From contig OZ037767.1 of the NCBI GenBank assembly GCA_964035545.1, positions 16,610,581-16,674,580 of the forward strand: a stretch of DNA of 64,000 bases, given 5' to 3'. The position numbers and the translations under genes were made by a program. How positions within the stretch are numbered: the stretch's first letter is position 1; the number at the start of each line of letters is the position of its first letter. The DNA comes from Bugula neritina. Its lineage: Eukaryota; Animalia; Bryozoa. Below the pieces are notes generated by a model, which saw only the letters and a list, made by a program, of their open reading frames with translations, was not told where the DNA came from and made no database searches. Positions 1-64,000 of this stretch are shown piece by piece.

Positions 1-2031
1 AGTGGATAACTCCAGGCAATAACTTTGGCTCCACTACATCAAAACGAACTAGTACATCTGAACCTGCTAGTGCAGCAGAGATGGGTAGTTCAGCCAATAG
101 AAACAAATATAAAGCAGAAGAAGGGAACCCCACCGTTCTTCACCACACTTCATTCAAGAAGATTGAGAGTTCTTTGGGCTATGGTGACACAGAACTGCCT
201 TTACCTGAGCAAATTGTTGAACTTCTAGGTAAAGTATATAATATCTATTATGTAATAACAATATTACGCTAACATGAAATTAGTATGTTCTTGTTGCTTT
301 ATTCAGGAGTCACATGATGGTTTTCCATTCCATAGCTTGTAGGCAAGGACCAAAAGGTGAAAAAGGAGTTAACGGAAAAGAAGGACTTGCAGGTATTGAT
401 GCTGCGACTGGGCAGAAAGGAGAACTCGGCATTGTGGGAGAGAAAGGAGTGTCAGGAGATAAAGGAGAAAGTGGACTCCTTGGTGTTGATGGCAGAATTG
501 GTAGAAAAGGAGAACCTGGTAATAATGGAGAAGTTGGGGTGCCTGAAGCAAGAGGTGAAAAGGGAATGCCTGCGGAAATCATGGAGAAAAAGGAGCTCCT
601 GGTAAAAACGGAGCCGATGGAGAAAAAGGAGTTCAGGGTTTGAAAGGTGATAAAGGTTTTCCTGGAAGAAATGGGATCAAAAGGTGATAGAGGAATACCT
701 GGAAAAATGGAAGAAATGGAGCACAAGGTAACACTGGTGCCAAAGGAGAGCCAGGTCAACCTGGAGCTCAAGGAGACAAGGGAATGATTGGTCAGAAGGG
801 ATCAAAAGGAATACAAGGACAGACTGGAGTAAGAGGAACGTGACTGGCTTGAAGGGAGATTCTGGTAGCGCTGGTAGTCCAGGAGTCAAAGGTGAACAAA
901 TAATGTACATTGTGTGAATCATTTATCATTACAAAAAATATTATACTAAATAGTATGTTGTATTACATATCGTATATTATATTGTGCAATATAGTGTATT
1001 ACTTATAATAGAACATACTATTATTAGTTTGACATGTGAAATTGCATTAAATTACTTCTCAAACGAAGCTGCAATTGCCATCCTTTCAAGTGCAAAAATC
1101 AATCTTCAGTATAGTTGAGTAGGAAAGCAAATGCCTTTCTAATATTTATCTGCAAATTCTGAACATCTCACAGCATTTCCAACCACTGATGTTTATGGGA
1201 AAGTAACTTTTTTTAAAATATTTTTTCTGCGGGTGACAGAGAAGTTAGTGGTCTAACTGGTGTTAAAGGAGCGCTCAGGGTGTCACTGGAAGAAAGGGAG
1301 ATAGAGGATTACCTGGTGCTACAGATGCTATGGGTGCTTCTGGAAATGTTGGAAGACCAGGTTTGAGAGGACCACCTGGACTTAATGGCATACCCGGTGC
1401 TAAAGGTGCAAAAGGTGCTTCTGGTAGTGTTGGTAGACCCGGTGCTAAAGGTGCTGCAGGTACTCCTGGTGTTAAAGGTGCAAGAGGAGTTCCTGGACTC
1501 AAAGGAGCACCAGGTAAAAATGTTACATATGGTTTACCAGGTTAACTAAAGAATTTCCATATTCAAAATCATGTTTTAATAACAGCTTATTGTGACATTG
1601 AAACATTCTTCCCTTCATACGTACTGCAATGTCAGGAGTTTTCACAAATATTGTTTATTCAAGGAGAGGATTGTCCAGTCCAAGATATTTTAGAAGCAAT
1701 TTTTGGTGGTAAGTGTTTACCTAGTCTTGTTTCCTAATAGTTGGTAGTCTTGTTCATAATGCTGATGAGAGGAATTCTATGCGGTGTAAGTAAAATATTT
1801 TCAGCTGACTACGACTTTGCTAACTATACACACATGCACTACTTTCTAGACACTGCAGGGAATTTCTACATACTGCACACTAATATAACAAAAAACTGGG
1901 ATGAAGCTAAAGAGTTCTGTGCCGAGCAAAAGGGGAGACAACTTGCTATTATACCAAGTTCCTGGGACGAGAGTCAGGAGTTTTTCAACAAACTTGAAGC
2001 TTTTTCTGGTGAGTATAACATGTGTCTCTTT

Positions 2032-2232
2032 ATATCTCTACACCTGTATATCTACACCTGTATCCCTACACCTATATCCCTACACCTGTATATCTACACC
2101 TATATCCTACACCTGTATCCCTACACCTGTATTCCTACACCTGTATTCTTACACCTGTATTCCTACACCTGTATTCCTACACCTGTATCTCTACACCTGT
2201 ATCCCTACACCTATATCTCTACACCTGTATTC
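2032..2232. repeat. 14-bp minisatellite (CTACACCTGTATNC)n, about 14 copies, intronic
   Basis: Directly visible tandem repeat; it explains the repetitive YTCIPTP/LHLYP ORFs. Confidence 0.92.
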
Positions 2233-2285
2233 TAGGCTAAAGTTGCGTTTATACCTTTGCTGGAAAAAGTACTGAGTTTCAGTTA

Positions 2286-2692
2286 GCCTAGGGCCACACT
2301 GTGCGTATTCTCACATGCGAAAATTAAAACCACGAGTAGCAAAGGTGTCCACTGTAGCGTCAGTGAGATTGGAAAGCTACTAGCTAATAATATTTCCATT
2401 TAATGTTACTGCTCGCCTTGTTGCTATGGCTACAAGTGCGAAATACATGAAATTTTCTATTTTAAATCGCAATCGCCAAACGCAATTTACTGGAATGTAG
2501 CACTAAAACAAAATAATTGGGCTCGATAAATAACTACCAACCAATTAAGTGACGACGACAGAGACGATTCGCACTTGCGTTCAGAATGCTGAGCGACAAG
2601 TGTGAATGTTTTCTCAACGCATACAGTGGACACCTATGCTACTCGTGGTTTAAATTTTCGCATGCGAAAATTCGCACAGTGTGGCCCTAGGC
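2286..2692. mobile_element. MITE with ~75-bp imperfect terminal inverted repeats, flanked by TA
   Basis: Left end GCCTAGGGCCACACTGTGCG..AAACCACGAGTAGCAAAGGTGTCCACTGTA mirrors right end TACAGTGGACACCTATGCTACTCGTGGTTT..CGCACAGTGTGGCCCTAGGC. TA on both sides; non-coding. Confidence 0.88.
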
Positions 2693-3714
2693 TAAATAAC
2701 ACTCGTCCGGGTACTCCCTTATAGTCAAACTGAAAATCGTTGAAATCAAATTGATGCGGAAGCTTACTTTCAAAAAGTGAAATCTGACTCGCCTAATCGC
2801 TATTTGATGACCTTTGTGAGCGTCGTGAATTAGTGAAGATGACAGCATAAAAGCAATAATTGGGAAGGCGCAGGCAATATAATTATTAACATATAAGTAG
2901 GTCATCTAATCGCCAAAGCCATAATTAAATAACTATGTTTACAAGGAGTTATTACTCTTTTTGAGTATTATTCTGAACCCGGCCGATTAAGTTATTACAG
3001 TGCAAAAAATTTTACGAGTGTCTTTTACAATGCAATGCTACACGGAGAAATTTCAACCCGGCCAAATTGAATTTCTTACTTAAAATCGCGAAGGTATAAA
3101 GGCAATTTAATACTATGATGGTGGTAATGAGCTCTAGATATCAATATTTTTCCTTACAGATCTTCCTAAAGACATATGGCTCGGTGGTAAAGAATTCTCT
3201 CCAAATAATTACCGATGGAATGATGGCAGTTCTATTCCAGACTACTTGTGGCACATTGATGAACCAAGATATAGAAGTAATATGTTACATAATATACTAC
3301 TATCAGTTCTCTATGCTTTTGATATTACCATATGACATAATATTGATAGTATAGATTTTATTGGGGGAGCCTTGGGTCTAGCACTTGTCACAAAAGTCTT
3401 CATAACTAATACTACCTACTGTACATGTCTAACTGTGTTATTCAGGTTATTCTATTTGTGTACTCTTTCCACAGATGATGAAAAATGTGTTGGACTGTGG
3501 AAAATGAATGGAGTTAGGAAAGTTAATGATTTCCTGTGCTGGTTAAATCATGCCTTCATCTGCCAAATGGTTATACAACAGTCAAGTTAACAGAGAAGAA
3601 ATGAGATGAAGAATGTTGCTTAAACTTCTATACTAACTATATACAAAATTATGTTTACAATATAATAGAAACCTTTGAACTATATTCCCAGAATGCCTTA
3701 CAACTCAGTTTTGT

Positions 3715-5705
3715 TTCAGTGATGACATAGCTTGTGATGCATTGAGTTCAGTGATGACACATAGCTTGTGATGTATTGAGATCAGTGATGACACATAGCT
3801 TGTGATGTATTGAGTTCAGTGATGACACATGACGTGTGATGTATTGAGTTCAGTGATGACACATAACTTGTGATGTATTGAGTTCAGTGATGACACATAA
3901 CTTGTGATGTATTGAGTTCAGTGATGACACATAACTTGTGATGTATTGAGTTCAGTGATGACACATAGCTTGTGATGTATTGAGTTCAGTGATGACACAT
4001 AACTTGTGATGTATTGAGTTCAGTGATGACACATAGCTTGTGATGTATTGAGTTCAGTGATGACACATAACTTGTGATGTATTGAGTTCAGTGATGACAT
4101 AGCTTGTGATGTATTGAGTTCAGTGATGACACATAACTTGTGATGTATTGAGTTCAGTGATGACACATAACTTGTGATGTATTGAGTTCAGTGATGACAC
4201 ATAACTTGTGATGTATTGAGTTTAGTGATGACCCATAACTTGTGATGTATTGAGTTCAGTGATGACACATAGCTTGTGATGTATTGAGTTCAGTGATGAC
4301 ACATAACTTGTGATGTATTGAGTTTAGTGATGACCCATAACTTGTGATGTATTGAGTTTAGTGATGACCCATAACTTGTGATGTATTGAGTTCAGTGATG
4401 ACACATAGCTTGTGATGTATTGAGTTCAGTGATGACACATAACTTGTGATGTATTGAGTTCAGTGATGACATAGCTTGTGATGTATTGAGTTCAGTGATG
4501 ACACATAACTTGTGATGTATTGAGTTCAGTGATGACACATAACTTGTGATGTATTGAGTTCAGTGATGACACATAGCTTGTGATGTATTGAGTTCAGTGA
4601 TGACACATAACTTGTGATGTATTGAGATCAGTGATGACACATAGCTTGTGATGTATTGAGTTCAGTGATGACACATAACTTGTGATGTATTGAGTTCAGT
4701 GATGACACATAACTTGTGATGTATTGAGTTCAGTGATGACACATAACTTGTGATGTATTGAGTTCAGTGATGACATAGCTTGTGATGTATTGAGTTCAGT
4801 GATGACACATAACTTGTGATGTATTGAGTTCAGTGATGACACATAACTTGTGATGTATTGAGTTCAGTGATGACACATAACTTGTGATGTATTGAGTTCA
4901 GTGATGACACATAACTTGTGATGTATTGAGTTCAGTGATGACATAGCTTGTGATGTATTGAGTTCAGTGATGACACATAACTTGTGATGTATTGAGTTCA
5001 GTGATGACACATAACTTGTGATGTATTGAGTTCAGTGATGACACATAACTTGTGATGTATTGAGTTCAGTGATGACACATAACTTGTGATGTATTGAGTT
5101 CAGTGATGACACATAACTTGTGATGTATTGAGTTCAGTGATGACACATAACTTGTGATGTATTGAGTTCAGTGATGACACATAACTTGTGATGTATTGAG
5201 TTCAGTGATGACACATAACTTGTGATGTATTGAGTTCAGTGATGACACATAACTTGTGATGTATTGAGTTCAGTGATGACATAGCTTGTGATGTATTGAG
5301 TTCAGTGATGACACATAACTTGTGATGTATTGAGTTCAGTGATGACACATAACTTGTGATGTATTGAGTTCAGTGATGACACATAGCTTGTGATGTATTG
5401 AGTTCAGTGATGACACATAACTTGTGATGTATTGAGTTCAGTGATGACACATAACTTGTGATGTATTGAGTTCAGTGATGACACATAACTTGTGATGTAT
5501 TGAGTTCAGTGATGACACATAACTTGTGATGTATTGAGATCAGTGATGACATAGCTTGTGATGTATTGAGTTCAGTGATGACACATAACTTGTGATGTAT
5601 TGAGTTCAGTGATGACACATAACTTGTGATGTATTGAGTTCAGTGATGACACATAACTTGTGATGTATTGAGTTCAGTGATGACACAGCTTGTGATGTAT
5701 TGAGT
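3715..5705. repeat. 34-bp tandem satellite (TGTGATGTATTGAGTTCAGTGATGACACATAACT), roughly 58-59 units
   Basis: Near-perfect tandem units with no spacers. Variants are a 32-bp form lacking CA, plus AGCT/AACT, GAGATC and TTTAG..ACCC forms. Confidence 0.97.
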
Positions 5706-6950: not shown

Positions 6951-6952
6951 AT

Positions 6953-8323: not shown

Positions 8324-11300
8324 ATGGTAAGTTCCCAGTATACTTTATTTTTATGTATGTTATATGCATGTATGTAAATGTATTTGTGCATGTGTGGGTG
8401 CATTATATGTGTGTGTATATATGCGTGCATGCACATGTATGCATGTGTGTATGTGTATATGTAGGCACATATGTATAACATACATCTGTATACATATGTA
8501 TGTTATACATATGTATACAGATGCTTGTAGAGCTTGCTATGAGCTATGTAATTATATAGTTTTTGGAAAGTTCAGTGTTTTAGCATGCAAAGTGCATTGA
8601 TACATTTTGAAGCTTCTTGTATCAGTTGATGGAAATTAAACGTTCAAAGGTTTTATTAATTTAAAAACTAGTGCATAATGAAAGCGTCTGTAAAATAAAC
8701 TCAAATTAATGCAATAATTAACTATGCTTTGTAAAATAAAATAGATAAATTATGATTCTGTATAATTGTTTATATAGTAACAGAATTAACTAAAAACCAA
8801 GTAGTAGCTTGCTTTTATGTACAATTGTGAATAGCATGAATATAGTTGAGCATAAATTTTTGAAATTTAAAATAAAATAGAAATACAAAAATGAATTATT
8901 GTATTAAATAGTAAAGCACTTCTGAAGGTGTTGTTAATAATATTTTTTTTTATTAATTGGAATGGATAATTTATTTGCTAACACTCAAGTTTTTAATTGA
9001 GTTAGTGTATAAGTAACTCCGAATTTTAAAATTTACTTCGACTGCATTCATTTTTCTCAACTGTACATTATATCAATATAATTCTATTCAGCGAACCGAG
9101 ATACACTTAAATATAAAGGATATTCTAAAGCTTAAAGCATATTTTTCGGTAAATAATAATTCCGCTGCTTATTTTATTGTCAGAAGAAATTCACTGGCAT
9201 TTATAATTATTGCTAATAATAGACAGCCATAGAGTTCAGTCTAGAAATATAAAATGATGATAGCATTAGAACAGGGGATAGGAGATAGGACAGCAGCTTC
9301 TAAGTGCTATATGTACTTACCGTAATTAAATTTATTCCGTAGAAGTTCATAGCATTAAAACAAGAATGAATGCAGCATCCATTGAATTATAACCCCTCTA
9401 GTTTCGGTTCAGTGCACGCATCTTATAACATTGGAAAATACTTTGTGCTTATGGTAATTCAATTTGTTTCTTCAAAATTCATACAAACTTTGTTGAAGGA
9501 AACAGAAAAGCAGAGTTCAAGGACATCAGAGACACACAGAGGTGTTCACGGAATATCTTTGGTGTTCTGTATTATAAATCTCCTCCTGTGGGTTTCCTTA
9601 CTGCTCTACGGTGTATTTGAAGTGTCAAACTTGTACAGAGAAGTTGATAGTCTTACAGCTGCTACTAGAGAGAAACCATCTGCTGCGACCTTGACACAAA
9701 CTAAACAGGAAGTAGAAGAAAAATTCATAGTGAGGCTCACAGAAGAGATAAGAAACATACAAAGAGAGAGTGAACGAGAAAAAAAGAATTTAACAAAAAA
9801 AGTTGAAGTGCTGGAAGAAAAGTTACGTTTAGTTGACAACCAACATGATAACTTTAAGAGATTCTGGAAGGAAGTGGTAGAAAAGGTGAAGTTAAAGTGT
9901 TGGATTTACTTACTGACCCCTGTGATGTAATGGTTAGCGAGCCTGCTTACAAGCGGGAGGTCTTGGTTTTGAATCCCATTTTATAAAGTTTATAAAGTGT
10001 ATTGTGCATGATATGCAGATAACCATATTTTACTCAATTGAAATCGTCACCACAGAGTAATCTATTTCGTTGCTTACAGGTGCTGTTTTATGAGAATAGA
10101 GAGAGCAAAGAGTGGATAACTCCAGTCAGTACTTCTGCCTCAACTACATCTGAACCAACTAGCACCGCAGAGATGGGTAATGGTGAAACAGAGCTGCATT
10201 TAACCAATGAGAGTGTTCCATACACACAAAGTTCAGCCAATAGAAACACCTCTAAGACAGAAGAAGGGAACCCCACAGTTCCACTTCATACTTCATTCAA
10301 GGATATGGGAAATTCCTTGGGCTATGATGACACAGACCTGCCTTCACCTGAGCAAATTGCTGAACTTCTAGGTAAAGTATATAATAATCATTAAATAATC
10401 ATTTACTCTAAAATCAAATAAATATATTCGTGTTGCTTTATTCAAGATTTTCACCATTTATTATTTTATTCTGTTTTTCAGCTTGTAGACAAGGACCAAA
10501 AGGTGAAAACGGACTTAACGGAAAGGATGGACATCCTGGAATTGACGGTGCAACTGGAGAGAGAGGAGCACCCGGCATTATGGGAGAGAAAGGAGTGTCA
10601 GGAGTTAAAGGAGAAAGTGGACTCTCTGGTGTTGATGGCAGAATTGGTAGAAAAGGAGAACCTGGTAATAATGGAGAAGTTGGGGTGCCTGGAGCAAAAG
10701 GTGAAAAGGGAATGTCTGGAAATCATGGAGAAAAGGGAGCTCCTGGTAGAAATGGAACCAAAGGAGAAAAAGGAGTTCAGGGTTTGAAAGGTGATAAAGG
10801 TTTTCCTGGAAGGAATGGACTTCCTGGTGTAGATGGCATAGCCGGTGAAAAAGGAGAACCTGGTATTTCCGGCTCAGCCGGCACACCAGGCTCAAAGGGT
10901 GATAAAGGAATGCCTGGAGAAAATGGAGAAAATGGAAGAAATGGAGCACCCGGTAACTCTGGTGCTAAAGGAGAACCAGGTCAAACCGGAGCTCCGGGAG
11001 ACAAGGGAATGATTGGTCAGAAGGGATCAAAAGGAATACAAGGACAAACTGGAGTAAAAGGAGTGACTGGTTTGAAGGGAGATCCTGGTAGAGCTGGTAG
11101 TCCAGGAGTTAAAGGTGCAAAAGGTAATGAGTAATGTACATACAATACCCATCAATCTAACTTTTAATCTCATCAAGTTATTTTTACATAGCACACTATT
11201 ACACAAATATTATACTAAGTAGCGTGTTGTATTATACATAGTATATATTATACTGTTTAATGTATTGTATTGCAGATAGTAAAATATATTACTATTAGTT

Positions 11301-13424
11301 TGGCATGTGATTTTACATTTAAACTATTTCTAAAGCCGTAACTAATTGAAATTGCAATTTTTTCAAGTATAAAAATCAAGTCCTAGCTTAGTATACCTTT
11401 TTAATGCTAATATGGCATAGGATTTCTGTACATCTAAAAGAATATTTTTAACCACTCATGTTTTTGGGCAAGTAAGCATTGTTATAATTGATTCTTGCAG
11501 GTGACAGAGGAGTAAAAGGTTTAACTGGTGTTAAAGGAGCTCAGGGTGCTACTGGAAGTATGGGAGATAGAGGACTAGCAGGTGTAAAAGGTGCGCCTGG
11601 AAGTGTTGGAAGTCCAGGTTTGAGAGGAACACCTGGAATTAATGGCATACCTGGTGCTAAAGGTGCAAAAGGTGCTTCCGGTAGTGTTGGTAGACCCGGT
11701 GCTAAAGGTGCTACAGGTACTCCCGGTGTTAAAGGTTCAAAGGGAGTTCCTGGACTCAAAGGAGCGTCAGGTATAAACATTATGCATGTGGGTCGTCATG
11801 AGATTCTATATTCAAAGTAATATTTTAGTAACAGCCTAATGTAATATTGAAACACTCTTTCCTAATATGTATTGCAACGTTAGAAATTTTCACACACGCT
11901 GTTTATTGTAGGAGAGAATCGCACAGTTGAAGATATATTGGAAGGGATTTTTGGTCGTAAGTATTTATCTATAAGTCTAGTTTCCTAATAGTTTATATTC
12001 ATGTTCTTTAAAAGTTGGTAGTCTTGTTCCCTAATAGTTGACAGTATTGTTCTCTAATGGTTGATAGTCTTGTTCTTTACTAGCTGGCAAAAGAATGGCC
12101 TGCAGTGCTTTAGTTCCCTAATGGTTTATCTAATGTTTTAAAACTACAATCACTTTAATAAACAATCAGTAGTTTGGAAACTATATGATGCAAATTTGAA
12201 AAAGTTGAAGTAACTAAACTTTACTCAATTGGCAATAGTAAAATTGAAGTATATAATTATTGTGTTTGTTCAATCTTATACCAATTACTCATATCTCACA
12301 GGATTCACCAATTTATTCAATAGGGGAAGTCTTTCAGATCGGCACGACTTATTATAGTTACCATAGATATCCTGGGAAAACTTGGCAAGATGCCAAAACC
12401 TTCTGCATTCAAAAAGCAGGTGGAAAACTCGCACAGTTACCTACTTCAAGTACAGAACGTCAAAGTTTGTCTCACAAGCTGAGATCTGTTTCAAGTGTGT
12501 ACAAATCATATAGAACTATATATACTTTCACTGAGTCTAACAATCTACAGTTGTGTCTTACTACTTTGATTATCTGATAAACAGAAGTAAAACATCTGAT
12601 AAACACTAGAAGTTCAGTTTCTATCACCAATTATTTTGCTTTTCAGTACAGAATAGGTAGTACTGTTAATGTAGCGTTATTTCTGTAGCATTCAAATTTT
12701 CTAATACGATTATTTAAGTTATTATAATATACATATATTTTATGATAATGAAGGTGTAGAAGCAACACAAGCAAAGCATCTGTCGACAGTTTAAGTTGAG
12801 TGTTAACATTACTGGATATAGCTGATTTATCTATAATTCTTATTTAAAATAGAAAATATATTTGGCTTTGTGTTAGGTTAAAAGTTGCTTTATATTTAAG
12901 TAGGTACATTTCATAATTCTATAACATAGTGTTGCTATACTGGAAGTTCGTTGTCATTTGCAGGCGGTTATAACCACGTTTGGGTTGGAGCAAATAGATT
13001 TTCTGGCACTTTTAAATGGAATGATGGTAGTTCTATCTCTGACTCTCTCTGGTTTTATGGACAACCAAATAATTTTGGTAAGGTTTTCTCTGTACATTAC
13101 TTTGTTTATAACAAACATAGATTAGACAGTCTGAGAACGTAAAGAAAGTTATCTTGCCTTGTTACTGCACCAGATAAACCTGTCATAATTATATATAAGA
13201 AACCATCATAATATAGCATAGAGTACAATCTGCTACAAAAAAACAGTCAACTTTTTTTGCTGAATCACTGATGCTCTTAGTAACCTATTGCCCAATAATA
13301 AAAGATGTCCTTTGCTGTTCTAGGAGGCCAAGAGAACTGTGCTGAATTCTTGCTCAACTATGGAACACTCACTGATCGTGAATGTAATTTTCTGTGGCCT
13401 TTTCTCTGTCAAATATCTAGTTAG
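8324..13424 (+). CDS. Copy 2: type II TM collagenous C-type lectin (scavenger receptor class A / collectin-12-like architecture), ~674 aa, apparently intact
   Basis: GT-AG exons 8324-8326 (ATG), 9499-9885 (tail, TM ISLVFCIINLLLWVSLLLYGVF, coiled coil), 10080-10371, 10482-11123, 11501-11770, 11912-11956, 12324-12494, 12964-13077, 13324-13424. Total 2025 nt, in frame. CTLD motifs TWQDAKTFC, WVGA, WNDGS, QPN, C..LTD..C..FLCQ. Confidence 0.85.
9921..9978 (+). mobile_element. tRNA-like fragment (probable SINE head) in intron 2 of copy 2; homolog at ~48512-48565
   Basis: TGTAATGGTTAGC D-arm-like segment, CCTGC-TTACAA-GCGGG stem-loop, GGTTTTGAATCCC T-arm-like segment; no complete acceptor stem. Confidence 0.45.
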
Positions 13425-14152
13425 GAAGTGAGTCTACACATCAACCAATCAGCATCCAGTGACAAGCTTAGAGTAGAGTGAATTTGTTGTACTCTAGAAA
13501 TATTTGTTATAGACTACATCTTACCGTAATGTGATATTATCATACTATATCTTACCGTAATATGATAGCAGTATATACTATGTTATACTGCACTATGATT
13601 CCTATACATATATACCTGACGAATACACAATCTACATTGAATAAAATAGACTGTGCTAGTTTATAATATTTCATCTTAATGAGGTGCTTTAGCTGCTGTT
13701 TTATAAGTATTATTATACATAGTTACAATTATTGAATACAATAACATGTATATCTAGTAAATAACATTTAAAAAATACCTAACTTGCAGCATTATATTAT
13801 CTGTAAATTGCCAAATCAATGAAAAATTTATTGAAATGGAAATTGAAGTGTTCTATTTTATCAACTGTATAACACTCTGAAATAAATAAAAAAAACATAT
13901 AATAATTCTACAAGTTTTTAATAGCATAACAAATTGTATATCTTTATCAATGAGAAAGTGGTACTATAAGTTCTATATTGAATATTAATGTCTGCTTTTT
14001 GAGTTATTGTTATATAATCACATCGCAACTTATCTGACAGCTGCATATGGTGGGAATGGGAAAAAGAGCGCCTGCTTCCCCTGTCATTCTGATATATTCC
14101 CATTTACTATAATGACTCATCATTATATCAGTCAATCATATAAGTTTATCAT

Positions 14153-16437: not shown

Positions 16438-17856
16438 AGATAGTTATTAAATTCCCAAAGTACTCTGTCAATTCGAAATTCCCAAATATATGATACAGTT
16501 TAATTATTATAACACTGAGATTTATATGGGTTGTAATAACTTAATTGAATAACTCATCCGCTTTTGAATTATTAAAATCTATTACAACTTATAGATTAAA
16601 TTCTATTTACAATATTGCCAGGATTAAAACTAAAACACAATTTTTGCTCAAACACTTGTTTCTTGACCTTGAATACTCAAAATAAATAGCTTTGAATACA
16701 AACGGAATCTGGAATCCTCCATTACTAACAAAACAAAAGCTTCCAATAAAAATACAAAAGGCAAGGATAACATTGGAGTTGACTAATCACGATGGAAGTA
16801 GAATTTGGCTAGTACAGGAAATTAAGACTGTAATTTCCTCTCAAATGGGGGGTTGTCACAAATTCTACTTTATAAACTGTATATATATATATATCTCTTT
16901 TGTTATTTAGCTTACGCTCATAATTAGTGTGGCACACAAGTCTATGCAAGTATTATTGCGCAATAGTTGTTTACATTCTTAGTCACTTTTTATTGGCTAA
17001 TGAATAGTGCCTATTCTGCACGAGTCATGCACAGTGTCGAATGTGGTAGTATTTTCTAGACTTATCAATTTAGTATAAAAGCAGATGCTTTACTTGTAAA
17101 AGTAGGTTCATTTTCATAAGTTCATCTGTGCATATCTTGCTGCAGGAGAAATAAAGCCTACTTATATTTATAACTCTATTTACTCTCAACTGGATTGGCA
17201 AGCTGTATGCTACTTGTCTATACACTTCTGACTACCAGACTTTTCGAAATCGTCACACTACAACCATAGTATTGTGACAATAACTAATGTTTACACAAAC
17301 TAAATCTTAATATAAAGTTCCCAGCAAACTTGGTCATGTTATCTACACATCTGTGTAGATCTGTAATTTCAATACTTAAAGGTTATCAATATATAATTTT
17401 CTCTGATGAGTTCCTTTTCAAAATTTTTGAGCGTCACATTAACTGGGAGTGTATTTCAAATTATAGAAAGAGTGAACTTTGGTTTGAGTAAACCTTTAAA
17501 ATAATTTAACTTGACTTTTACTAAAATAAAAGAGCGGATTAAGTTTTAGAAACTAATAATTGGGGGTTGCATTATATAATTATTATAATCTATCATATCA
17601 ATTATAAAACATATTATTCTAAAACTCGCTAAAGTTTTACTATTATTTTCCTTCAACAAAGTGCATTGTTTGCATTATGATACATCGACATACTTTTTAG
17701 AACAAAATAAAACTATTATCTCCCCCCCCTCTTCTATCCATGTGTTTATATTATATAGAGTTGTATTGCTTTAGTTCAACATATAAACATATAAACCAAA
17801 AGACTCAGTTACATCTAACAGTTACTCTCACTTTCATCAGAGTGTACAACTTGAGT

Positions 17857-45546: not shown

Positions 45547-45549
45547 CAT

Positions 45550-49900: not shown

Positions 49901-52054
49901 AACTATTTCTAAAACCGTAACTAATTGAAATTGTAATTTTTTCAAGTATAAAAATCAAGTCCTAGCTTAGTATACATTTTTAATGCTAATCTGGCATAGG
50001 ATTTCTATACATCTAAAAGAATATTTTTAACCGCTGATGTTTTTGGGCAAGTAAGCATTGTTATAATTGGTTCTTGCAGGTGACAGAGGAGTAAAAGGTT
50101 TAACTGGTGTTAAAGGAGCTCAGGGTGCTACTGGAAGTAAGGGAGATAGAGGAATAGCAGGTGTAAAAGGTGCGCCTGGAAGTGTTGGAAGTCCAGGTTT
50201 GAGAGGAACACCTGGAATTAATGGCATACCTGGTGCTAAAGGTGCAAAAGGTGCTTCTGGTAGTGTTGGTAGACCCGGTGCTAAAGGTGCTACAGGTACT
50301 CCCGGTGTTAAAGGTGCAAAGGGAGTTCCTGGACTCAAAGGAGCGTCAGGTATAAACATTATGCATGTGGGTCGCCATGAGATTCTATATTCAAAGTAAT
50401 ATTTTAGTAACAGCCTAATGTAATATTGAAACACTCTTTCCTAATATGTATTGCAACGTTAGAAATTTTCACACACGCTGTTTATTGTAGGAGAGAATCG
50501 CACAGTTGAAGATATATTGGAAGGGATTTTTGGTGGTAAGTATTTATCTATAAGTCTAGTTTCTTAATAGTTTATATTCATGTTCTTTAATAGTTGATAG
50601 TCTTGTTCACTAATAGTTGATAGTCTGGTTCTTTAAAAATTGGTAGTCTTGTTCCCTAATAGTTGACAGTATTGTTCCCTAATGGTTGATAGTATTGTTC
50701 TTTACTAGCTGGCAAAAGAATGGCCTGCAGTGCTTTAGTTCCCTAATGGTTTATCTAATGTTTTAAAACTACAATTACTCTAATAAACAATCAGTAGTTT
50801 GGAAACTATATGATGCAAATTTGAAAAAGTTGAAGTAACTAAACTTTACTCAATTGGCAATAGTAAAATTGAAGTATATAATTATTGTGTTTGTTCAATC
50901 TTATACCAATTGCTCATATCTCACAGGATTCACCAATTTATGTGTTTTTAAGGGGAAGTTTTTCAGATCGGCACGACTTATTATAGTTATCATGAATCTC
51001 CTGAGAGAACTTGGCAAGATGCCAAAACCTTCTGCATTCAAAAAGGAGGTGGAAAACTCGCACAGTTACCAACTTCAAGTACAGAACGTCAAAGTTTGTC
51101 TAACAAGCTGAGATGTGTTGCAGGTGTGTACAAATCATAGCACTACATACACTTTCACTGAGTCTAACATCCTTGAGTTGAGTCCAACTACTTTGATTAT
51201 CTGATAAACAGAAGTAAAGCATCTGATAAACACTAGAAGTTCAGTTTCTATCACCAATTATTTCGCTTTTCAGTACAGAATAGGTGGTACTGTTGATGTA
51301 GCGTTATTTCTGTAGCATTCAAATTTTCTAATACGATTATTTAAGTTATTATATAATATACATATATTTTATAATAATGAAGGTGTAAAAGCAACACAAG
51401 CAAAGCATCAGTTGACAGTTTAAGTTGAGTGTTAACATTACTGGATATAGCTGATTTATCTATAATTCTTATTTAAAATAGAAAGTATATTTGCATGGCT
51501 TTGTGTTAGGTTAGAAGTTGCGTTATTTGAGTAGGTACATTTCATAATTCTATAACATAGTGTTGCTATACTGAAAGTTTGTTGTCATTTGCAGGCGGTT
51601 ATAACCACGTTTGGGTTGGAGCAAGTAGAGTTTATGGCACTTTTAGATGGGATGATGGTAGTTCTATTCCTGACTCTCTCTGGTTTTATGGACAACCAAA
51701 TAATTTTGGTAAGGTTTTCTCTGTACATTACTTTGTTTATAACAGACATAGATTAGACAGTCTGAGACTAAAGAAAGTTATCTTGCCTTGTTACTGCACC
51801 AGATAAACCTGTCATAATTATATATAAGAAACCATCATAATATAGCATAGAGTACAATCTGCTACAAAAAATCAGTCAACTTTTTCTTGCTGAATCACCG
51901 ATGCTCTTAGTAAACTATTGCCCAATAATAACTGATGTCCTTTGTTGTTCTAGGAGGCCAACAGAACTGTGCTGAATTGATGCTCGACTCTGGAAAACTC
52001 AATGATCGTAGATGTGATTCTCTGTGGCCATTTCTCTGTCAAATATCTAGTTAG
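46926..52054 (+). CDS. Copy 7: type II TM collagenous C-type lectin, ~671 aa, apparently intact; closest to copy 2
   Basis: Exons 46926-46928, 48091-48477, 48668-48959, 49070-49702, 50080-50349, 50491-50535, 50953-51123, 51595-51708, 51954-52054. Total 2016 nt, in frame. CTLD motifs QPN / LND. One collagen Gly>Cys at the exon junction 49702. Confidence 0.85.
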
Positions 52055-52211
52055 GAAATGAGTCTACACATTAACCAATCAGCATCCAGTGACAAGCTTA
52101 GAGTAGAGTGAATTTGTTGTACTCTAGAAATATTTGTTATAGACTACATCATACTGTAATATGATATTATCATACTATATCTTACCGTAATATGATAGCA
52201 GTATGTACTAT

Positions 52212-52663
52212 TGTATCGGTTTGTGTTTGTGTCTGGTTGCAAGATATGCTTTAACTGCTAACCAACTTGGCAACGGGTTTTCGAGTTTATTAACTGTCAA
52301 ATCGTACCCTATAAAATGGGAAACATTAGAAATTGTATAAATAAGTAGTCACAATATAAATAAAAATTCAGAGGAACACTACGAATATTACAGAACCAAA
52401 AAAATTGACATGAACTATTATAATTCTAATAAACTTACAATATTGATGCGTGGATAAAAATCTTAGCCATTACAATACCGAAACCGATAGTTTATTCATA
52501 CAAAGAGTGTAAATATGGCGGTTTGATCATGATACACTGACTCATGCAGTACAGTGAATGAACTAGCTCTGCCAGCTAATAGTAGCTTTGGTAAAAGCTT
52601 TTGAAGCTTGAAAGCTTTAATGATTGGCTGCCTGCCAATACTTCTGGGTGGCATACCAATACA
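52212..52663 (-). repeat. 3' LTR
   Basis: Matches 57926-58377; I found one mismatch (52471 T vs 58185 C). Confidence 0.95.
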
Positions 52664-52883
52664 TCGGTGGGGTCGAATTGTTTGGCAGATACTATTCTGA
52701 CAAATATTGATAAATTATGTAAATCAAAACAAACAAACCAAAATAGGACCAGTCACAGACCATGAAATTCTTGCACCAATCCGCTGACCCCTCCGCGCAC
52801 CAGCCCGTCCCCCGAAAAACGGTTGAATGCAAACCTCTCCAGCGACACGAGCGTACACGCGGCCAAGAAGGTAGATCAGTCAT

Positions 52884-55800
52884 TTATGGGTTCACTTCGG
52901 TTAATAAAGCCAACCTATGCACGCTGCGGGTTATGATAGTGTCTTTACAGCCTACATAGTGCCTCAGTTTCCCCGCTACCTTATAGTTTTTGTAGGAAAG
53001 GGCTACTTTCCTTACTATGCCATCCTTGCTCGGATATACTTGATGTACTCGAGCTAGTTTATACTGATTACGCAGCTGATTTGGATCCATAACAACTACA
53101 ACATCTCCCACCTGAAAGTTTCGTCTTGGGGTATGCCACTTTTGGTGATGAATCAGTGTGGGTGCATACAATTCAGTCCACTTCTGCCAGAAGTCATCTG
53201 AGACTGCATTTACCAGAGCCAGTCGCCCCCTTAAGGAGTAGTCTGTATTCCAGTTGCCAGGATTCTTGATGAAGGGTCGTCCAATAAGTTGGCAGTTAGG
53301 TGTTAATATGTTGATCTCGGAGTCTGAATCTGGCAGTAATCCCAATGACCTTTCATTTAGTGTGTTTGCAGCTTCAGTGCAGATTGTGAGAAATTCTGTA
53401 GGTGAAAGCCGGCGGTTGCTCATTGAAAATGTGAAACATCTCTTGACAGCCTTTATGAGTGATTCAGCAGCGCCCTGATACCAGGGGCTGTCACCGGGTC
53501 CAAATTCCCATTGCAATCCATTTTCTGCGCTGGTTTTCTTGATAGAACCTTTGTCCATGCGTCTCTACATATCTTTGAGTTCTTTTTCTGCTCCAGCTAA
53601 CTGTGTTCCAGGATCAGAATAAATCTTGGATGGCCAGCCACGAATGTTGACAAATCGAGTTAATGCCAACAGGAAAGAATCACTGTCATATCCAAAAACT
53701 GCTTCGATGTGTGCTGCTCGTGAACTGATGTCTGTGAATATTACTCCATAAGCTTTGCTCGAAGTTCTAGTCTGTTTTTCTCCTCTCACAATATACGGAC
53801 CAAAAAGATCCATCATTACATTGTTGAACGGCGGTCCGGTTGTTAGTCGTTCTGTAGGTAGACTTCCCATCAGTTGATCAGTAAAGCGAGGTTGTTTGAG
53901 TCGACACATTTGGCATGATGTTACTATGCCCCTAGCAACCTTGGATCCCTGCATAGTCCAAAACTCTTCTCGGAATCTTGCGAGTGTTGCATCTCGGCCA
54001 CGGTGATAGCTGTCTGTGTGTGCCTGCCGCATTGCCAAGTAGGTAAAGTAGTGAGTGGTGGGAAGGATTGATTGCGTGTGCGTTTTAATCGCTGTCATGG
54101 GGTTATGCCTTAGGAGTCTACTGCCTACTATCCATACTCCACTCTCTGTCTTAATGGGGTGAAGTCTTGTATATTTCCCTTTAATCTTGTTCAACTCAGA
54201 ATCTATAGTGTGTTGCACCTGCTTCAGTAAGTAGAGTTTGGTCTGCTGTAGATCTGCCACGGTGACGAGATCAGGTTGGATTCCCTTAAAACTTTTGTAC
54301 TTGAAGATGTTGCGAACTTGAGCTATTGCCCATGTTAGACTCTTGAGGCTGCTGAAATTTTCATATTTAATAAATGATTGTACTTCTGTTGATGTAGTGA
54401 CGGTGTAAACTATTTTCTTCTCTCCAAAGACAACCTCATTCGAGTCAGATGGCGATTTTATATCCCATTGATTCTCTGGCAGATAGAGAAAATTTGGGCC
54501 TCTCCACCATTCACTCTCAGGTCCAATGTCATTGACAGGCTTCCCTCTTGTAAGCCAATCTGCTGTGTTTTCCTTGCCACTTACCCAGTGCCAGCAGCTC
54601 ATATCCCCATTGGTTGCTCCCTGAATTTCTCCGATGCGTACACCCTCGTAAACGTGAAACCTTGTTGACTTCTTTTGGAGCATCTTGAGCACCGTTTCAG
54701 ATTCTATAAGCTGATAAACTTTCTCAAACTCATAGCGCATTTCAGTCTTAATAACTTGTCTGCCTCTCTTTGACCATACGGCCGCATTGAGTTCTAGTTG
54801 AGGAATCTTGAGTTGTTGTTTTATGGGTGCTATACGACTTTTAGCTGTAGCTTTGTTTACCCCTTTAGCAGTCGCTTTAGATTCTGCCCCCTCATTGGCC
54901 GGAACAGGCGTGGATTGTGTGATAGAGGTACTGCTAGTAAACTCATACTTTCTTTTAATCTCTACAGACATGGACATAGAGTCATTGACTTCTAAAGATC
55001 TGTTCAACTGTCCAGAACCGATTTGTCCTGCAGACTCAGTGTCTGGGTCTCCCGGGCTCTGTAAAGGGTCGGAATCATCGGCTGACTCAATCATACCACA
55101 TTCAGTGGCTATAGTATGTGATTCACCACAATTTATAATAGTCTGAGGTCTTGAAAATGACTTTGCAAACTGACTGGGAGATGCGTCGGGACTATTGACA
55201 CTGTAAGTTGGCGTAGAAACTGTAGACAATTCAAAATCACAACTGTTGAGCGTGTCGTTGTGTATGCTTTGAGTGAATTCAACTTCCTCTAACTTCTCAT
55301 GCGCCATGTTAGCCTGTACATGAAAAGATGAGGATGGAAGTGTAGAAAAGTTGCTAAGGGCAGGGTGTGATCCCTGCACACACAGTCCAAAGGGTCCGGA
55401 ATATACATAGAGGTGAGGTCCTGCTTGATCAACTTGGTGTTTTGGATGCAATCCAAGAAGATCGTTACCAATTAGCAGGTCGATGGGTCCCGTCCTCTTC
55501 AATAGCTTGTGAGTATCTACTTTCGGGAAGAGAGATTTGAGGATGTTTGCATCAAGTGGCCTGTTGATAGCCCCTGTGAGTTTCCGAAGGCTGTAAGCTA
55601 AAATTGCAAAGGTCCTTCCCTTTGGAGTTTGTAACTTTACTTCGTAAATAGTAGAAGTTTCGCTAACTTCATGTTCACCAAGTGTGTTCATTTCCAAATT
55701 CACCTTATCTATTTGTCGCGCACCCCACGCTTTAGCAGCTCTCTCCGATATGAATGAAGCATTGGATCCGCCGTCAAAGAATACAATAGCTGTATGAGAT

Positions 55801-57902
55801 GTACCCACTACTTGAGCCTGCTGAATGGCAAATACTGTAGTATTTCCTGGATGATTGTGCGCTCCATGATTGGGAGACACACGGACCGTGGTGCTAACAG
55901 CAGACGCTTCAGAATTCTCATTACTCTTGTGCTTAATTTGACCAGCTTTTACTTTATTCTTGTTGGTATTACAATTGGTATGTGTATTAGTTTCAGCTGA
56001 TTTGATACACAATAATACATGGTGGGTTGTTTTATCACAGACTGGACAAGGGGTTCGGAAATTTGGACAGCACTTGGGCTCATGGGCACCCAAGCACCTA
56101 GCACATAGAGAATTAGTTTTTATTAACTTGTATCTTTCATCTACAGACAACGCCAAGAAATTTCTGCACTCAACAAGACAATGACGCTCACTGCGATGAA
56201 TAAAACAGTAATTCTCACTATCAATGGTTTTGCTATTATTAGTAGACCTGTTACTACTAGACTTTGGGCCACTGCTTTCAGTGTGGAACGCTTTCACCTT
56301 CTGTTTACGCATACTGGAGGACTGCGGGTTTAGAGTTTCTATGCGTCTGAGGGCTATCTGCCGTTCCTGCTCTAGAAACCTCATGAGGTGTGGGAATGGC
56401 TTGATTCTCTCCTCGTGAGTAAGTGAGTGAAAGTGTCTATCCCAGTCCCGTCTAATGCTTGTAGGTAATAGGTTTGCAAGAGTGTCGACTTGTGGCAGCG
56501 TAACAGTTTGCAAAAGTCCCACTTCACCGAGTTGGCTGTACGAACTTTCCACTGCATTGGCCATTTTGACGAGTTCTCGTGCATCTCCTTCTTTTACTGG
56601 CTTTAGTTCTTGTAGATTGCTGAAGACTGCTTGCACACTCATGCTAGGATCATTGTAGACCTCTTCTAATCTACACATCATTCTCTCGTAAGCTTGAGGC
56701 TGAGTTGCGAAGATTGGCTGAACCATCTCCAGAGCTTCGCCTGTGAGAAATTTTTTCAATTCACAAGCCCTATCGACATCATCGTAAAACATAGTAGCAT
56801 ACCTTAGCCACACTGACCTAAATTCCGGCCAATGGTATCTAGTGCCGTTAAATGGCCTGGGTTGTGAATGAGTTTTATGTATAGATGAATTAAAGTTATT
56901 TCCACCTGTATGTCTAGAGTCATAACTTATTTGAGTTGTCCCATTAGGGTAGCTATCATATGCATTGACAACAGAGGAAGTTGCGCCGCGAATTAAAGAT
57001 TCAGAATGAGCTGCACGATCAGGACTACCATGTAGATCACGTACTGAGAACGTAGAAGAACGAACATCTCTGACATTGGTACTTGCTATGACACCTGGAT
57101 TTGATGCCAAAGCTTCACCGGATGTGTGATCTTCCCATAGTACCTGCCTATCACTACCGCTTGCTGTGATACCTGGATTTGGTGCAAGAGTAGCCTCATG
57201 TGTGCTAGGCTGTGATCTAGGAGGAAACAACCGACTCGACGCGACCATAGTCGGTGCATGACTCGCGCCGTCTGAAGGTGACCCCCCACCGCTCTCCGCG
57301 AGACCGGACCGGACCACGGACGGATCAGATTCACGATGTTCGAAACTCATGCTCTGTGACTGAGCCCTTGACATAAGAGTAAACTTAAACATACAATAAT
57401 CTAGAGATAAAATAACTTCATCTAGTTCTAATAATAAATCAGAAAAACCTATGGTATCTGCCAAACTTTCTGAAAGAGCTACACATTTCCTATGATGTTC
57501 AGTGATAAGAGTATTGTCAGTACAATCAGTGACTAATCCATTGGCTTTCTTAATCGCTAAAATAAGGCTGTGCTTGATTTTATAGAATTTGCTATGCCAA
57601 GTATTACAGTCAGAAATAGCTTTGTCATAACTAGCCTTTACAGTTTGATAGTACTCTACTGGACTCATCTTATTAACATAAGCAATGTCTTCCATAGACT
57701 CATCTGATGAAACGTATTCCAAAAAGTCATAATGGATAGTTAGAAACTCTTGATATGTAGATTCAAGCTGAGATCGCAGGCATTCCACTTGTGTAGAGTT
57801 GCTACTAGAGATTGCTGATTCTATGAGATTAGTTAGCATTGTTACCTTAGACCTCAGAGTAGTACGTTGCTTCTTGAGATTAACTATGTCCTGTCGGTCC
57901 AT
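52884..57902 (-). pseudogene. BEL/Pao polyprotein (Gag with three Cys/His knuckles, aspartic protease, C-terminal RNase H remnant, integrase) with one in-frame stop
   Basis: Knuckles CFIH..H..C, CARC..H..C, CPVC..H..C; protease FFDGGSNASFI and LLIGND; RNase H remnant AKSRIAP..IPQLEL; integrase H-H-C-C and MDLFGP / YSDPG / AAES. TAG at 53565-53567 is in frame with ORF 52884-53558. No YxDD RT domain. Confidence 0.9.
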
Positions 57903-57925
57903 GTCAGCCTCAGCAATATTGGTAC

Positions 57926-58377
57926 TGTATCGGTTTGTGTTTGTGTCTGGTTGCAAGATATGCTTTAACTGCTAACCAACTTGGCAACGGGTTTTCGAGT
58001 TTATTAACTGTCAAATCGTACCCTATAAAATGGGAAACATTAGAAATTGTATAAATAAGTAGTCACAATATAAATAAAAATTCAGAGGAACACTACGAAT
58101 ATTACAGAACCAAAAAAATTGACATGAACTATTATAATTCTAATAAACTTACAATATTGATGCGTGGATAAAAATCTTAGCCATCACAATACCGAAACCG
58201 ATAGTTTATTCATACAAAGAGTGTAAATATGGCGGTTTGATCATGATACACTGACTCATGCAGTACAGTGAATGAACTAGCTCTGCCAGCTAATAGTAGC
58301 TTTGGTAAAAGCTTTTGAAGCTTGAAAGCTTTAATGATTGGCTGCCTGCCAATACTTCTGGGTGGCATACCAATACA
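57926..58377 (-). repeat. 5' LTR
   Basis: Direct repeat of 52212-52663. Confidence 0.95.
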
Positions 58378-60343: not shown

Positions 60344-63300
60344 ATGGTAAGTTCCCGGTATATTTTAGTGTATTCCAACTATTTTATTCCTATAATATTT
60401 ATTTTCATTAATGCAAACAGATATAACAATTTGTTTCAAATTTATTGAATAGGGAACTTTGTTTACAAAACATAGCAATAATAGTTTCACAAATTTGTAT
60501 CAATACTAAAAAATTAATAATTCATAAAAACTTTATGAAATATGAATTAAATTTCTGTAATAATTATTTAGTTACAATTTTTGTTCATCAAATTCATTAT
60601 CTTACAGAACTTCATATTATAGTTTACAAAGACTAAATGTTTTACACCATTGGTTTGACTTTTTAATAATTTAGAATACAGCAATTACCATAATAAAGGT
60701 GTCTGAAAAACAAAACTAAAAACAAAAAATTAATCATTATATGTGAAAAAGCTAGTAAAATACATGAACTATAACTTTATATGAAATATAATAGTAACTA
60801 AATATATAATAAAGAGCAATTGTAATTATAGTTTTGCATTTTGAAGTACTAATGAAACTGTAGCATAAATATAATTATTTGAAATCAAAATTCTTCCAAA
60901 GTGTAGCCTATAATAAATTAGACGTAGGATCGCACGATGCGTTTTACACGTTCGTGACGTGCGAGAAAACCCGTTTAGCCCAAAAATGGGACGCCGTAAG
61001 CGGAATTTTCAAGCGTCTAACATTCTGAGCAAGAAAAACGGCAAGCTCGTGCGTGTTTAATCTAATTGGCTTATTATCATTTAGGGAGCACAATTTATTT
61101 ATTTCAATTTATGTTTTAGCTTTTAGCAAACTGAATTAAAACAGTTTCATATAATTTGCATTTCCACTTTTATAATATCAAAGTCACTTTGCAGATGACG
61201 TAATTTTAAAAACAAACGTCTGTACGCGAGCAGCAAAGTTTAACGCTAACATCATTGGTTAATAAATTTTTGCACTCGCAACACACGCAATGTGTGTGGC
61301 AGGTCAGTAGCGTGTATTCCTGCACGTCACGAACGTGTAAAACCGGTCGTGTGGCCCTACGCTAACAATTGAACAAAGATGAAATTTATTAAACAAATGT
61401 TGCTTACACTGATCTCATGTAAACTAATTGAAATTATTTCTTTTTTTGTGAAACTTTTAATTTATGTTTATAGGAATTTCAACACAATTATGCAGTTAAA
61501 TGATTGCAATTCTATACTGCATTCATGTTCTCCAACAGTAAATTAAATCAATATATTAGTACACAGGCAAATTCTTGAAATTATATTATGAATTTTTTAA
61601 TTTTACATAGGCATGTAACACTATCACGTATAGTTAAATGATGTTACATCTCAATATATATTTTTATACTGAATCCATGCTCTCCAGCAGTAAATTAGAT
61701 GAATATATTAGTTACTTGTTGGCTATAATATCTTACAGACTATATCCTAAACCCGTAGGCTATGCATGTCATTACAATCATTTCAATAAATTTTGGCATT
61801 TAAAATGAATATCGGTCAAATCTAAATAGTCAACGCAACTTTTTTATAATATTAAATGGAACTGTTTGTTCAATAAGAAACAACCTCTATAAAGATCATT
61901 GAAATAATATTACATATCTTGTTTGGGGTTAAATTTAGATGTCTACATAGTTAATGGATTGTTTACGTTGTTATGTTAAGAAGATAGATTGCAATTATAT
62001 TAAAATTATATACCAAAAACTATTTAGAACTTTATAATTTTCTTTATAACATATTGTGTAACAGTAGACAACCACAATATTTCAAATAAAATTATCATAG
62101 CATTAGTACAAGTATTAATGTAATTAGCTTAAGGTATCAGAGTATATTATGTAATTACAGCAACTCATTTTATATTTCATACAAACTTTGTTGAAGGAGA
62201 AGGAAAAGAAGAGTTCAAGGGCATCAGAGACACACAGAGGTGTTCGCGGAATATCTTTGGTGTTCTGTATCATAAATCTTCTCCTGTGGTTTTGCTTACT
62301 GCTCTACGGTGTATTTGAAGTATCAAACTTGTACAGAGAAGTTGATAGTCTCACAGCTGCTACTAGAGAGAAACCGTCTGTTGCGACCTTGACCCAAACT
62401 AAACAGGAAGTAGAAGAGAAACTCATAGTGAGGCTCACAGATGAGATCAGAAGTGTAAGAAGAGAGAGTAAAAGAGAAAGAAAGAGTATAGAAGAAGAAA
62501 ACAAAGTGTTGAAGGAAAAGTTGCTCTCACTAGAAACACAATATGATAACTTCAAGAGATTCTGGAAGGAGATGGTAGAGAAAGTAGGTAGTTATTAGTT
62601 TACTTATTCGCATGAAACAAGCATAGCCCCATTTCTTGGTATATAATCGAATAATTTTACTTTAGGTTGTCTCCCATGAGAATAAAAGTGAAGTGAGAGT
62701 TGAAAGACCAGAAGTAACTACAAGTTCTGTGTTTATTATGACTAACACCTCGACTGGGAGTGAAAGTACTGACTCAGGGAGTGGCGAATCTCCATTTCTG
62801 ATTGGTGGAGAGGTGGGATATAGTATATTGTGTTAATGCAGTAATGATAAATATATATTTTACTTACCTGAAATTGCAATTACAGAGTAATCTATTCCAT
62901 TGGTTGCAGGTGCTGTTTCATGAGAATAGAGAGGGAAATGAGTGGATAACTCCAGTCAGTACTTCTGACTCAACTACATCTGAACCAACTAGTATAGCAG
63001 AGCTGGGTAGTGGTGAAACTGAGTTGCATTTAACCAATGAGAGCGTTCCATACACATACACACAAAGTTCAGCTAATAGCAACAGCTCTAAGACAGAAGA
63101 AGGGGACCCCACAGTTCTCCTCCCCACTTCTTTTAAAAATATGGAAAGTTCCTTGGGCTATGATGACACAGAGCTGTCTTTACCTGAGCAAATTGTTGAA
63201 CTTTTAGGTAAATTGTATAATATTCATGTAATATTGTACATTAATACAAATAAGCAAGTTTATGTTGCTTTATTCAAGATATGCGTTATTTATTGTTTTA

Positions 63301-63946
63301 TTCTGTTTTATAGCTTGTAGACAAGGACCAAAAGGTGAAAAAGGGGTTACTGGAAAAGATGGTCATCCAGGTATTGACGGTGCAACCGGGGAGAAAGGAG
63401 AACCCGGCATTATGGGAGAGAAAGGAATGTCAGGAGAAAAAGGAGAAAGTGGACTTCCTGGTGTTGATGGCAGAATTGGTAGAAAAGGAGAACCTGGTAA
63501 TAATGGTGAAGTTGGGGTGTCTGGAACAAAGGGTGAAAAGGGAATATCTGGAAATCATGGAGAAAAAGGAGCTCCTGGTAGAAACGGAGCCGATGGAGAA
63601 AAAGGAGTTCAGGGTTTGAAAGGTGATAAAGGTTTGCCTGGAGAGAATGGACTGCCTGGTGTAGATGGCATAGCTGGTGAAAAAGGAGAACCTGGTCGTT
63701 TTGGCTCAGCCGGCACACCAGGACCAAAAGGCGATAAAGGAATGTCTGGAGAAAATGGAAGAAATGGAGCACCTGGTAACACTGGTGCTAAAGGAGATCC
63801 AGGTGAACCTGGAGCTCAGGGAGACAAGGGAATGATTGGTCAAAAGGGATCAAAAGGACTACAAGGACAGACTGGAGTAAGAGGAGTGGCTGGTTTGAAG
63901 GGAGATTCTGGTAGAACTGGTATTCCAGGAGTCAAAGGTGAAAAAG
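60344..63946 (+). CDS. Copy 8 (5' part; continues beyond window): type II TM collagenous lectin, intact as far as visible
   Basis: Exons 60344-60346, 62197-62583, 62666-62812, 62910-63207, 63314-63946, in frame and GT-AG. Confidence 0.82.
60921..61362. mobile_element. MITE, same element at the same intronic site as 26885-27328
   Basis: Near-identical sequence and flanks, so it was inherited by duplication or conversion rather than inserted independently. Confidence 0.88.
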
Positions 63947-64000
63947 GTGAATATTGTATTACACAGTATATATATTATATTGTTTAATATGTCGTATTAC

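Follow-up and report, generated by a model that had tools for sequence, protein, structure and literature searches.

A tandem array of collagen-stalked C-type lectin genes in the bryozoan Bugula neritina: candidate cell-surface pattern-recognition receptors

The array and its gene layouts

The 64,000-nucleotide stretch of the Bugula neritina genome analysed here (the window; C3:16,610,581-16,674,580 of a 216 Mb assembly) carries a tandem array of genes that combine a putative membrane anchor, a collagen rod and a C-type lectin head. Self-comparison of the window brought out a recurring unit, 6-10 kb long, whose Gly-X-Y runs lie on the + strand, and exon mapping resolved it into eight colinear copies on that strand (w1-w8; Table 1), as a first-pass annotation made from the sequence had claimed; its estimate that about half are disabled also holds, with four intact (w2, w4, w7 and w8) and four broken (w1, w3, w5 and w6). 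Spliced by script using local GT-AG introns, the copies follow a nine-exon plan: an ATG-only exon, one exon for the transmembrane (TM) segment and coiled coil, one for a stalk, two for collagen, one for a linker and three for the C-type lectin. The first exon ends with the ATG, directly followed by a GTAAGT donor, in every window copy that retains its 5' end, and the intact window copies, which belong to a class of 637-677 amino acids and 90-101 Gly-X-Y triplets, themselves encode 98-101. The annotation's picture of a single repeated gene form is borne out by this shared plan, though not every copy is complete and w1 carries a distinct, divergent lectin type.

Because many copy types stand at 85-93% identity to one another, far more than two haplotypes could supply, an artefact of assembly, the refutation that the annotation itself had raised, is unlikely for the array as a whole; run X1 moreover yields intronic contigs without differences, and the gene is present in independent samples. 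The eight-copy array is real; the near-identical pairs w2/w7, w4/w8 and w3/d69 may yet include false duplications. Contig depth (56 for a piece found only in w4, 90-115 for pieces common to w8) was not used here, as it leaves paralogs and haplotigs inseparable.

Full mapping extended the annotation's "at least 8" copies to 19, making the array twice as large as first noted: 17 lie across about 153 kb (16.575-16.728 Mb), the first two of them inverted, and a distant pair lies at 12.57 Mb, 4 Mb from the main array. Copies outside the window are named by their distance in kb from its start (m upstream, d downstream) or, for the distant pair, with B. The TM/coil exon occurs 17 times genome-wide, always on C3, and two further copies lack it; a weak TM match at C3:16.12 Mb was examined and dismissed. 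Frames are open in 11 of the 19 copies and disabled in 8, and the open ones fall into three layouts: type A, with long collagen and a lectin (w2, w4, w7, w8 and d75); type B, with short interrupted collagen, 51+14 triplets around a 26-residue interruption, and a lectin (m9.9, m21.6 and B22); and type C, in which there is no lectin and the collagen runs into a Gly/Arg tail (m16.4, d83 and d88). The short type B form is ancestral and the long rod and lectin-less form derived, type C copies having arisen recently from lectin-tipped copies of the same array. The short and lectin-less forms lie outside the window and had been overlooked. In lectin-less d83 and d114 (L008-L012) and m16.4 (L005) the second half of collagen exon 1 is repeated in tandem once or twice more; these additional stretches have usable splice sites, and each could add about 36 triplets to the rod. 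An orphan lectin exon 1 of the family, 67% identical, stands at C3:13521551-13521706 with no other exon within 10 kb.

Two runs from two studies, X7 and X9, taken by guess to be RNA, contain a GT-AG joint at the stalk/collagen intron of w4 (joint 29066-29173; intron 29070-29175) that is absent from the DNA-like runs X1 and X3. In one X9 contig the end of collagen exon 1 continues into a 30-base stretch that matches the terminal exon of d83 and d114 exactly, indicating that a lectin-less type is spliced, and one X7 contig spans lectin exon 1. Some member of the family is probably transcribed and spliced.

Protein layout, relatives and counterparts

From their N terminus the encoded proteins run through 18 polar residues, a hydrophobic segment, a helical coil, a Ser/Thr/acidic stalk, a Cys, collagen, a linker and the lectin. 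The hydrophobic segment, a 19-mer at residues 19-37 that is the only one in intact window copies, has a predicted mean hydropathy of 2.5-2.8 and stands behind 18-24 polar residues, the 18-residue tail being basic; from this we infer a type II topology, with a short N terminus inside and one TM segment. AlphaFold predicts a continuous helix for the coil (residues 62-128 of the exon, predicted local distance difference test score about 90-97). Next come a stalk of about 97 residues, which does not look helical, and a conserved Cys directly ahead of the collagen. The collagen region spans 270-303 residues (Pfam Collagen, E 9e-39) and is joined to the lectin by 15-18 residues, 15 in the intact window copies. 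Its distal half has a net charge of +16 to +20 in the long form and is acidic in the short one; the basic distal half of the derived rod is a possible polyanion site. The eight intact cytoplasmic tails contain no YxxF-type, NPxY or dileucine motif, nor any other motif for endocytosis or signalling; direct signalling would thus be a less likely mode of action than capture or partner-assisted tethering.

The lectin domains retain the C-type lectin fold motifs with their four conserved cysteines and carry at calcium site 2 the motif EPN, QPD or QPN, with LND. Mannose-type EPN occurs in m21.6 and in a protein of Watersipora subatra described below, galactose-type QPD in m9.9, B22, d75, w3, w5 and d69, and the hybrid QPN in all four intact window copies. 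The site is near-canonical in m21.6 (EPN) and in m9.9, B22, w3 and d69 (QPD); in w2, w4, w7 and w8 the QPN hybrid is accompanied by Gln or LTD. Heads are 61-80% identical to each other, two recent pairs excepted, and 35-45% identical to the divergent type. Single window lectin exons match lectins weakly; window lectin domains align to that of the Watersipora homolog at E 1e-18 to 1e-24.

Database queries used single exons, with the full-length Watersipora protein as a proxy for the joined spliced proteins. A profile of the TM/coil exon run against 1.84 billion proteins gave seven matches, none from a vertebrate; the sole named one is W. subatra XP_067943226.1, and the others trace to a BRYA-labelled sample, to unnamed runs and to JGI contigs that bear the label AY690838, a mitochondrial accession of Bugula neritina, which is a cheilostome bryozoan. 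XP_067943226.1, an uncharacterized protein of 858 amino acids with Collagen and Lectin_C domains (Lectin_C E 5e-16), is a true homolog: it shares the TM/coil similarity, the collagen start and the type B interruption (58-62% identity), and its gene has introns at the same positions as the array copies in three places: behind the coil, ahead of the collagen and inside the lectin. That lectin is encoded by three exons, carries EPN and LND, and is 30-41% identical to array lectins; the protein differs in its longer tail and stalk and in a short interrupted collagen with an acidic distal part. A protein search found no second such protein in W. subatra, where the gene seems to be single copy; one matching gene there and 19 here agree with the lineage-specific expansion that the annotation had proposed. 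Word-indexed searches with the Watersipora protein returned only itself or generic collagens, which says little about distant kin, and the only feature look-alikes in the Atlas were chordate collectin clusters (0.88-0.90).

Class A scavenger receptors are homotrimers that bind polyanions or microbes and combine a type II TM segment, a helical coiled coil and collagen that spans 70 residues or more and is in part lysine-rich, and the architecture of TM, coil, collagen and lectin was not found in non-vertebrate genomes (Whelan 2012, PMC3567963). Their ligand region is lysine-rich (PMC3567963), and the basic distal half of the array's long collagen can be likened to it. SCARA4/CL-P1/COLEC12 (SRCL), to which the annotation had compared the array, shares with it a type II anchor, a helical coil, collagen with a basic region and one terminal C-type lectin, and some array heads have the same galactose-type QPD followed by Trp. 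Unlike CL-P1, the array proteins have a short coil and a long unstructured stalk, collagen of up to 101 triplets, LND in place of WND, and a tail of 18-24 residues without an endocytic motif (the SCARA4/COLEC12 tail carries a tyrosine endocytosis motif), and in place of one conserved gene there are 19 fast-changing copies. SCARA3 ends at its collagen, as do m16.4, d83 and d88, but these lectin-less copies derive recently from lectin-tipped ones and end in a Gly/Arg tail.

The likeness thus holds for domain order and is architectural only: outside the repeat and the tip, the TM/coil profile found no sequence affinity to the five vertebrate class A receptors among the 1.84 billion proteins, and COLEC12 orthology has no support. 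In search rankings, as opposed to a tree, CL-P1 (2ox9) is not among the best 60 for the Watersipora lectin and stands about 44th (E 0.98) for window lectin exon 2. Since relatives of the anchor exon appear only in bryozoan-type data, the family probably resembles vertebrate SCARA4/CL-P1 and SCARA3 through convergence, not orthology. A bryozoan family with counterparts to the vertebrate forms, lectin-tipped and tip-less alike, would make a clear case of convergence or would point to a much older origin. Collectins (group III of the C-type lectin domains; MBL, SP-D and COLEC10/11) also place a C-type lectin after collagen, but they are secreted and have a helical neck between the two, whereas the array proteins have their coil before the collagen and only the short linker after it, and their membrane anchor, of the uncleaved type, rules out a secreted collectin. 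Among invertebrate chordates, Ciona has an expansion to nine collectins (PMC514892). The colmedins of sea urchin, nematode and vertebrates join a TM segment, collagen and a globular tip (PMC4491621), but that tip is olfactomedin, not a lectin, and no comparable tandem expansion was noted; coral collagen-SRCR proteins are a partial invertebrate precedent (PMC5119243). Literature searches, which covered few subscription journals, found no publication on this family; the family, unfamiliar to the annotation as well, is apparently undescribed.

Divergence and shuffling among copies

Among intact window copies the ratio of nonsynonymous to synonymous substitution rates (dN/dS) is 0.36 for the TM exon, 0.40 for the stalk, 0.51 for collagen and 0.87 for the lectin; tips that change faster than the remainder are expected of recognition genes. 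For the lectin, site model M2a beats M1a (p 0.0015 with seven intact copies, 13% of sites at 3.5), a signal that holds when w7 or w2 is dropped (p 0.0014 and 0.008), and for lectin exon 3 alone the model again favours a class of sites whose dN/dS exceeds 1 (p 0.008); the same comparison gives no signal for TM, stalk or collagen exon 2. Flagged sites lie where helix 2 ends and directly behind the LND strand with its Cys, positions that flank the sugar site in C-type lectins. Roughly one lectin site in two is under strong conservation (dN/dS about 0.1). Exon 3 differs between w2 and w7 at 12 of 101 positions against 13 of 394 in its flanks, namely its adjoining intron and 3' DNA (Fisher p 0.001), and between w2 and w4 at 14 of 101 against 10 of 396 (p 3e-5); 10 of the 11-12 changed codons are nonsynonymous. 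Positive selection on the lectin tip is probable, though not proven, because gene conversion can inflate site tests.

A fixed self ligand predicts neither this exon 3-centred excess nor the switching between EPN, QPD and QPN, which bears on the possibility that the proteins are structural: membrane collagens, colmedin- or MACIT-like, that fasten the epidermis to the cuticle, the skeleton, the basement membrane or the substrate, with a lectin directed at mineral or at matrix glycans made by the animal itself. Such a role would suit the type II membrane collagen layout, the three open lectin-less copies with their Gly/Arg tail (one type being spliced in X9), the motif-free tails and the seemingly single Watersipora gene, and the skeletal proteomes of lophotrochozoans repeatedly include collagen and C-type lectin domains (PMC13425148). 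We regard it as unlikely, if credible.

The copies have also been shuffled. Exon trees conflict, and several copies are mosaics: w8 (w5-like anchor, w4-like body), m31.9 (type B anchor, type A collagen, divergent lectin) and m9.9 (type B body, lectin exons 2-3 near those of w3 and d69). Copies w2 and w7 are 97-99% identical in the body and 88-94% in the lectin exons. Unequal crossing-over would create and kill copies and swap anchors, rods and tips, gene conversion would reshuffle variants in the ligand-binding exon, and selection would retain new tips. Taken with the evidence of diversifying selection, this matches the birth-and-death with variable lectin tips that the annotation had suggested.

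Might such turnover be mostly neutral, in an unstable tandem locus where only one gene or a handful is needed (the ancestral short form) and the tips of the extra copies are under relaxed constraint? The disabling of 8 of 19 copies, the abundance of mobile elements and satellites in the region, an overall lectin dN/dS of 0.6-0.9 that does not exceed 1, and the many differences that conversion explains would all be accommodated. Yet the conserved half of the lectin sites and the 100-triplet collagens, which remain in frame at dN/dS 0.3-0.5, tell against this account, and drift alone would not make exon 3 outpace adjacent non-coding DNA; we consider it improbable.

In an independent sample, the lectin exons of one type A copy reach at best an 81-88% match to any of the 19. 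A tip that matches none here, and tandem polymorphic surface proteins in a colonial animal, could reflect self/non-self recognition between colonies or gametes, with heads that bind conspecific polymorphic glycans or proteins and haplotypes that differ in copy content. The tails, however, have no signalling part, and the independent sample could belong to another cryptic species; we consider the proposal improbable.

Proposed function and surroundings of the array

We interpret the family, with modest confidence, as an expanded set of type II cell-surface pattern-recognition receptors that would work in the manner of class A scavenger receptors; recognition of microbial or particle glycans is the likeliest function, and the trimer, the glycan ligand and an immune or symbiotic role are inferred. 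The signal-anchor would set the short N terminus inside the cell; the coil and pre-collagen Cys, by analogy with class A scavenger receptors, would drive trimer formation; and the collagen, with 300 residues at 0.29 nm each, would make up a rod about 85 nm long that holds three heads off the membrane. These would bind glycans on microbes or particles in a Ca-dependent manner, by the avidity of three, and the basic distal collagen would bind polyanions.

Several observations weigh against this interpretation. Copies w4, w7 and w8 combine QPN with Gln where a second Ca-ligating Glu is expected, which may weaken or change the binding of sugars. The codon tests are the author's approximate implementation and open to inflation by conversion; collagen exon 1 is itself marginal in the site test (p 0.036, 1% of sites); and the differences between w2 and w7 for which both states occur in other paralogs are commoner in the lectin (21 of 32) than in the body (6 of 29; p 0.0007), which points to gene conversion. 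RNA contigs match at 86-95%, come from other populations and cover collagen far more than lectin, and one matches the lectin-less terminal exon. They answer the annotation's proviso that no copy might be expressed for some family member, but do not show expression of the lectin-tipped window copies themselves. This genome, too, has many other C-type lectin arrays.

A bolder and distinctly speculative extension of the pattern-recognition reading is that bryozoans independently built a system like the class A scavenger receptors and that this lineage made of it a modular, conversion-diversified repertoire selecting or controlling bacterial partners, such as its vertically inherited symbiont; anchor, rod length and charge, and tip would then assort independently of one another, and trimers might be mixed. 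Many invertebrates have expanded lectin arrays that evolve fast. Recognition genes of bryozoans have hardly been studied, and heads as short and discrete as these lend themselves to simple glycan-array and symbiont-binding tests.

Table 1. Gene copies and other elements in the window, by position in the 64,000-nucleotide stretch
Feature	Position	Strand	Remarks
w1	1-3576	+	Disabled by frameshifts in collagen and lectin; TM exon immediately upstream of window
w1 exons	stalk 1-228; collagen 336-901, 1233-1513; linker 1664-1708
w1 lectin exons	about 1848-2008, 3160-3276, 3472-3576	+	Divergent type II lectin
w2	8324-13424	+	Intact, 674 amino acids; 101 Gly-X-Y without interruption; QPN/LTD
w2 exons 1-5	ATG 8324-8326; TM and coil 9499-9885; stalk 10080-10371; collagen 10482-11123, 11501-11770	+
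w2 exons 6-9	linker 11912-11956; lectin 12324-12494, 12964-13077, 13324-13424	+
w3	17857-24135	+	Disabled: ATG exon kept, TM exon absent, frameshift in collagen
w3 lectin exons	23093-23263, 23633-23746, 24035-24135	+	Open; QPD
w4	26326-32044	+	Intact, 676 amino acids; QPN/LND
w4 exons	TM 28058-28444; stalk 28772-29069; collagen 29176-29808, 30118-30378; linker 30521-30565	+
w4 lectin exons	30937-31107, 31565-31696, 31944-32044	+
w5	34199-39432	+	Disabled: frameshift and stops in collagen exon 1; linker exon deleted
w5 lectin	within 34199-39432	+	QPD; 3-residue deletion
w6	41861-44250	+	Disabled: stop in collagen exon 1, donor lost; truncated after that exon, nothing downstream
w7	46926-52054	+	Intact, 671 amino acids; QPN/LND
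w7 lectin exons	50953-51123, 51595-51708, 51954-52054	+
w8	60344-64000, continuing outside window to 66183	+	Intact, 677 amino acids
w8 TM exon	62197-62583	+	Closest to w5; rest of copy closest to w4 (recombinant)
Minisatellite	3715-5705		34-bp unit, 59 copies, 96% matches
Non-LTR (long terminal repeat) retroelement	14150-16438	+ (reverse transcriptase)	(AATC)n tail; inserted after w2
Insertion	21041-22936		1.9 kb, in w3 linker-lectin intron
High-copy repeat	about 26900-27390		In w4 intron 1; very high contig depth
BEL/Pao-type LTR retroelement	52209-58377	- (reading frame)	Young, between w7 and w8; 455-bp terminal repeats 99.6% identical; frame broken by stop near 53565

Elsewhere in the assembly, further C-type lectin arrays lie at C2:29.94-30.04 Mb, C9:5.12-5.23 Mb, C1:5.11-5.17 Mb and C2:21.0-21.09 Mb. 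The first of these, near 29.9 Mb on C2, consists of about ten 9-kb units with identical scores, possibly a collapse or a very recent amplification. At C4:17.046-17.078 Mb, collagen repeats make up most of two single open frames, one about 3000 and the other about 3500 codons long.

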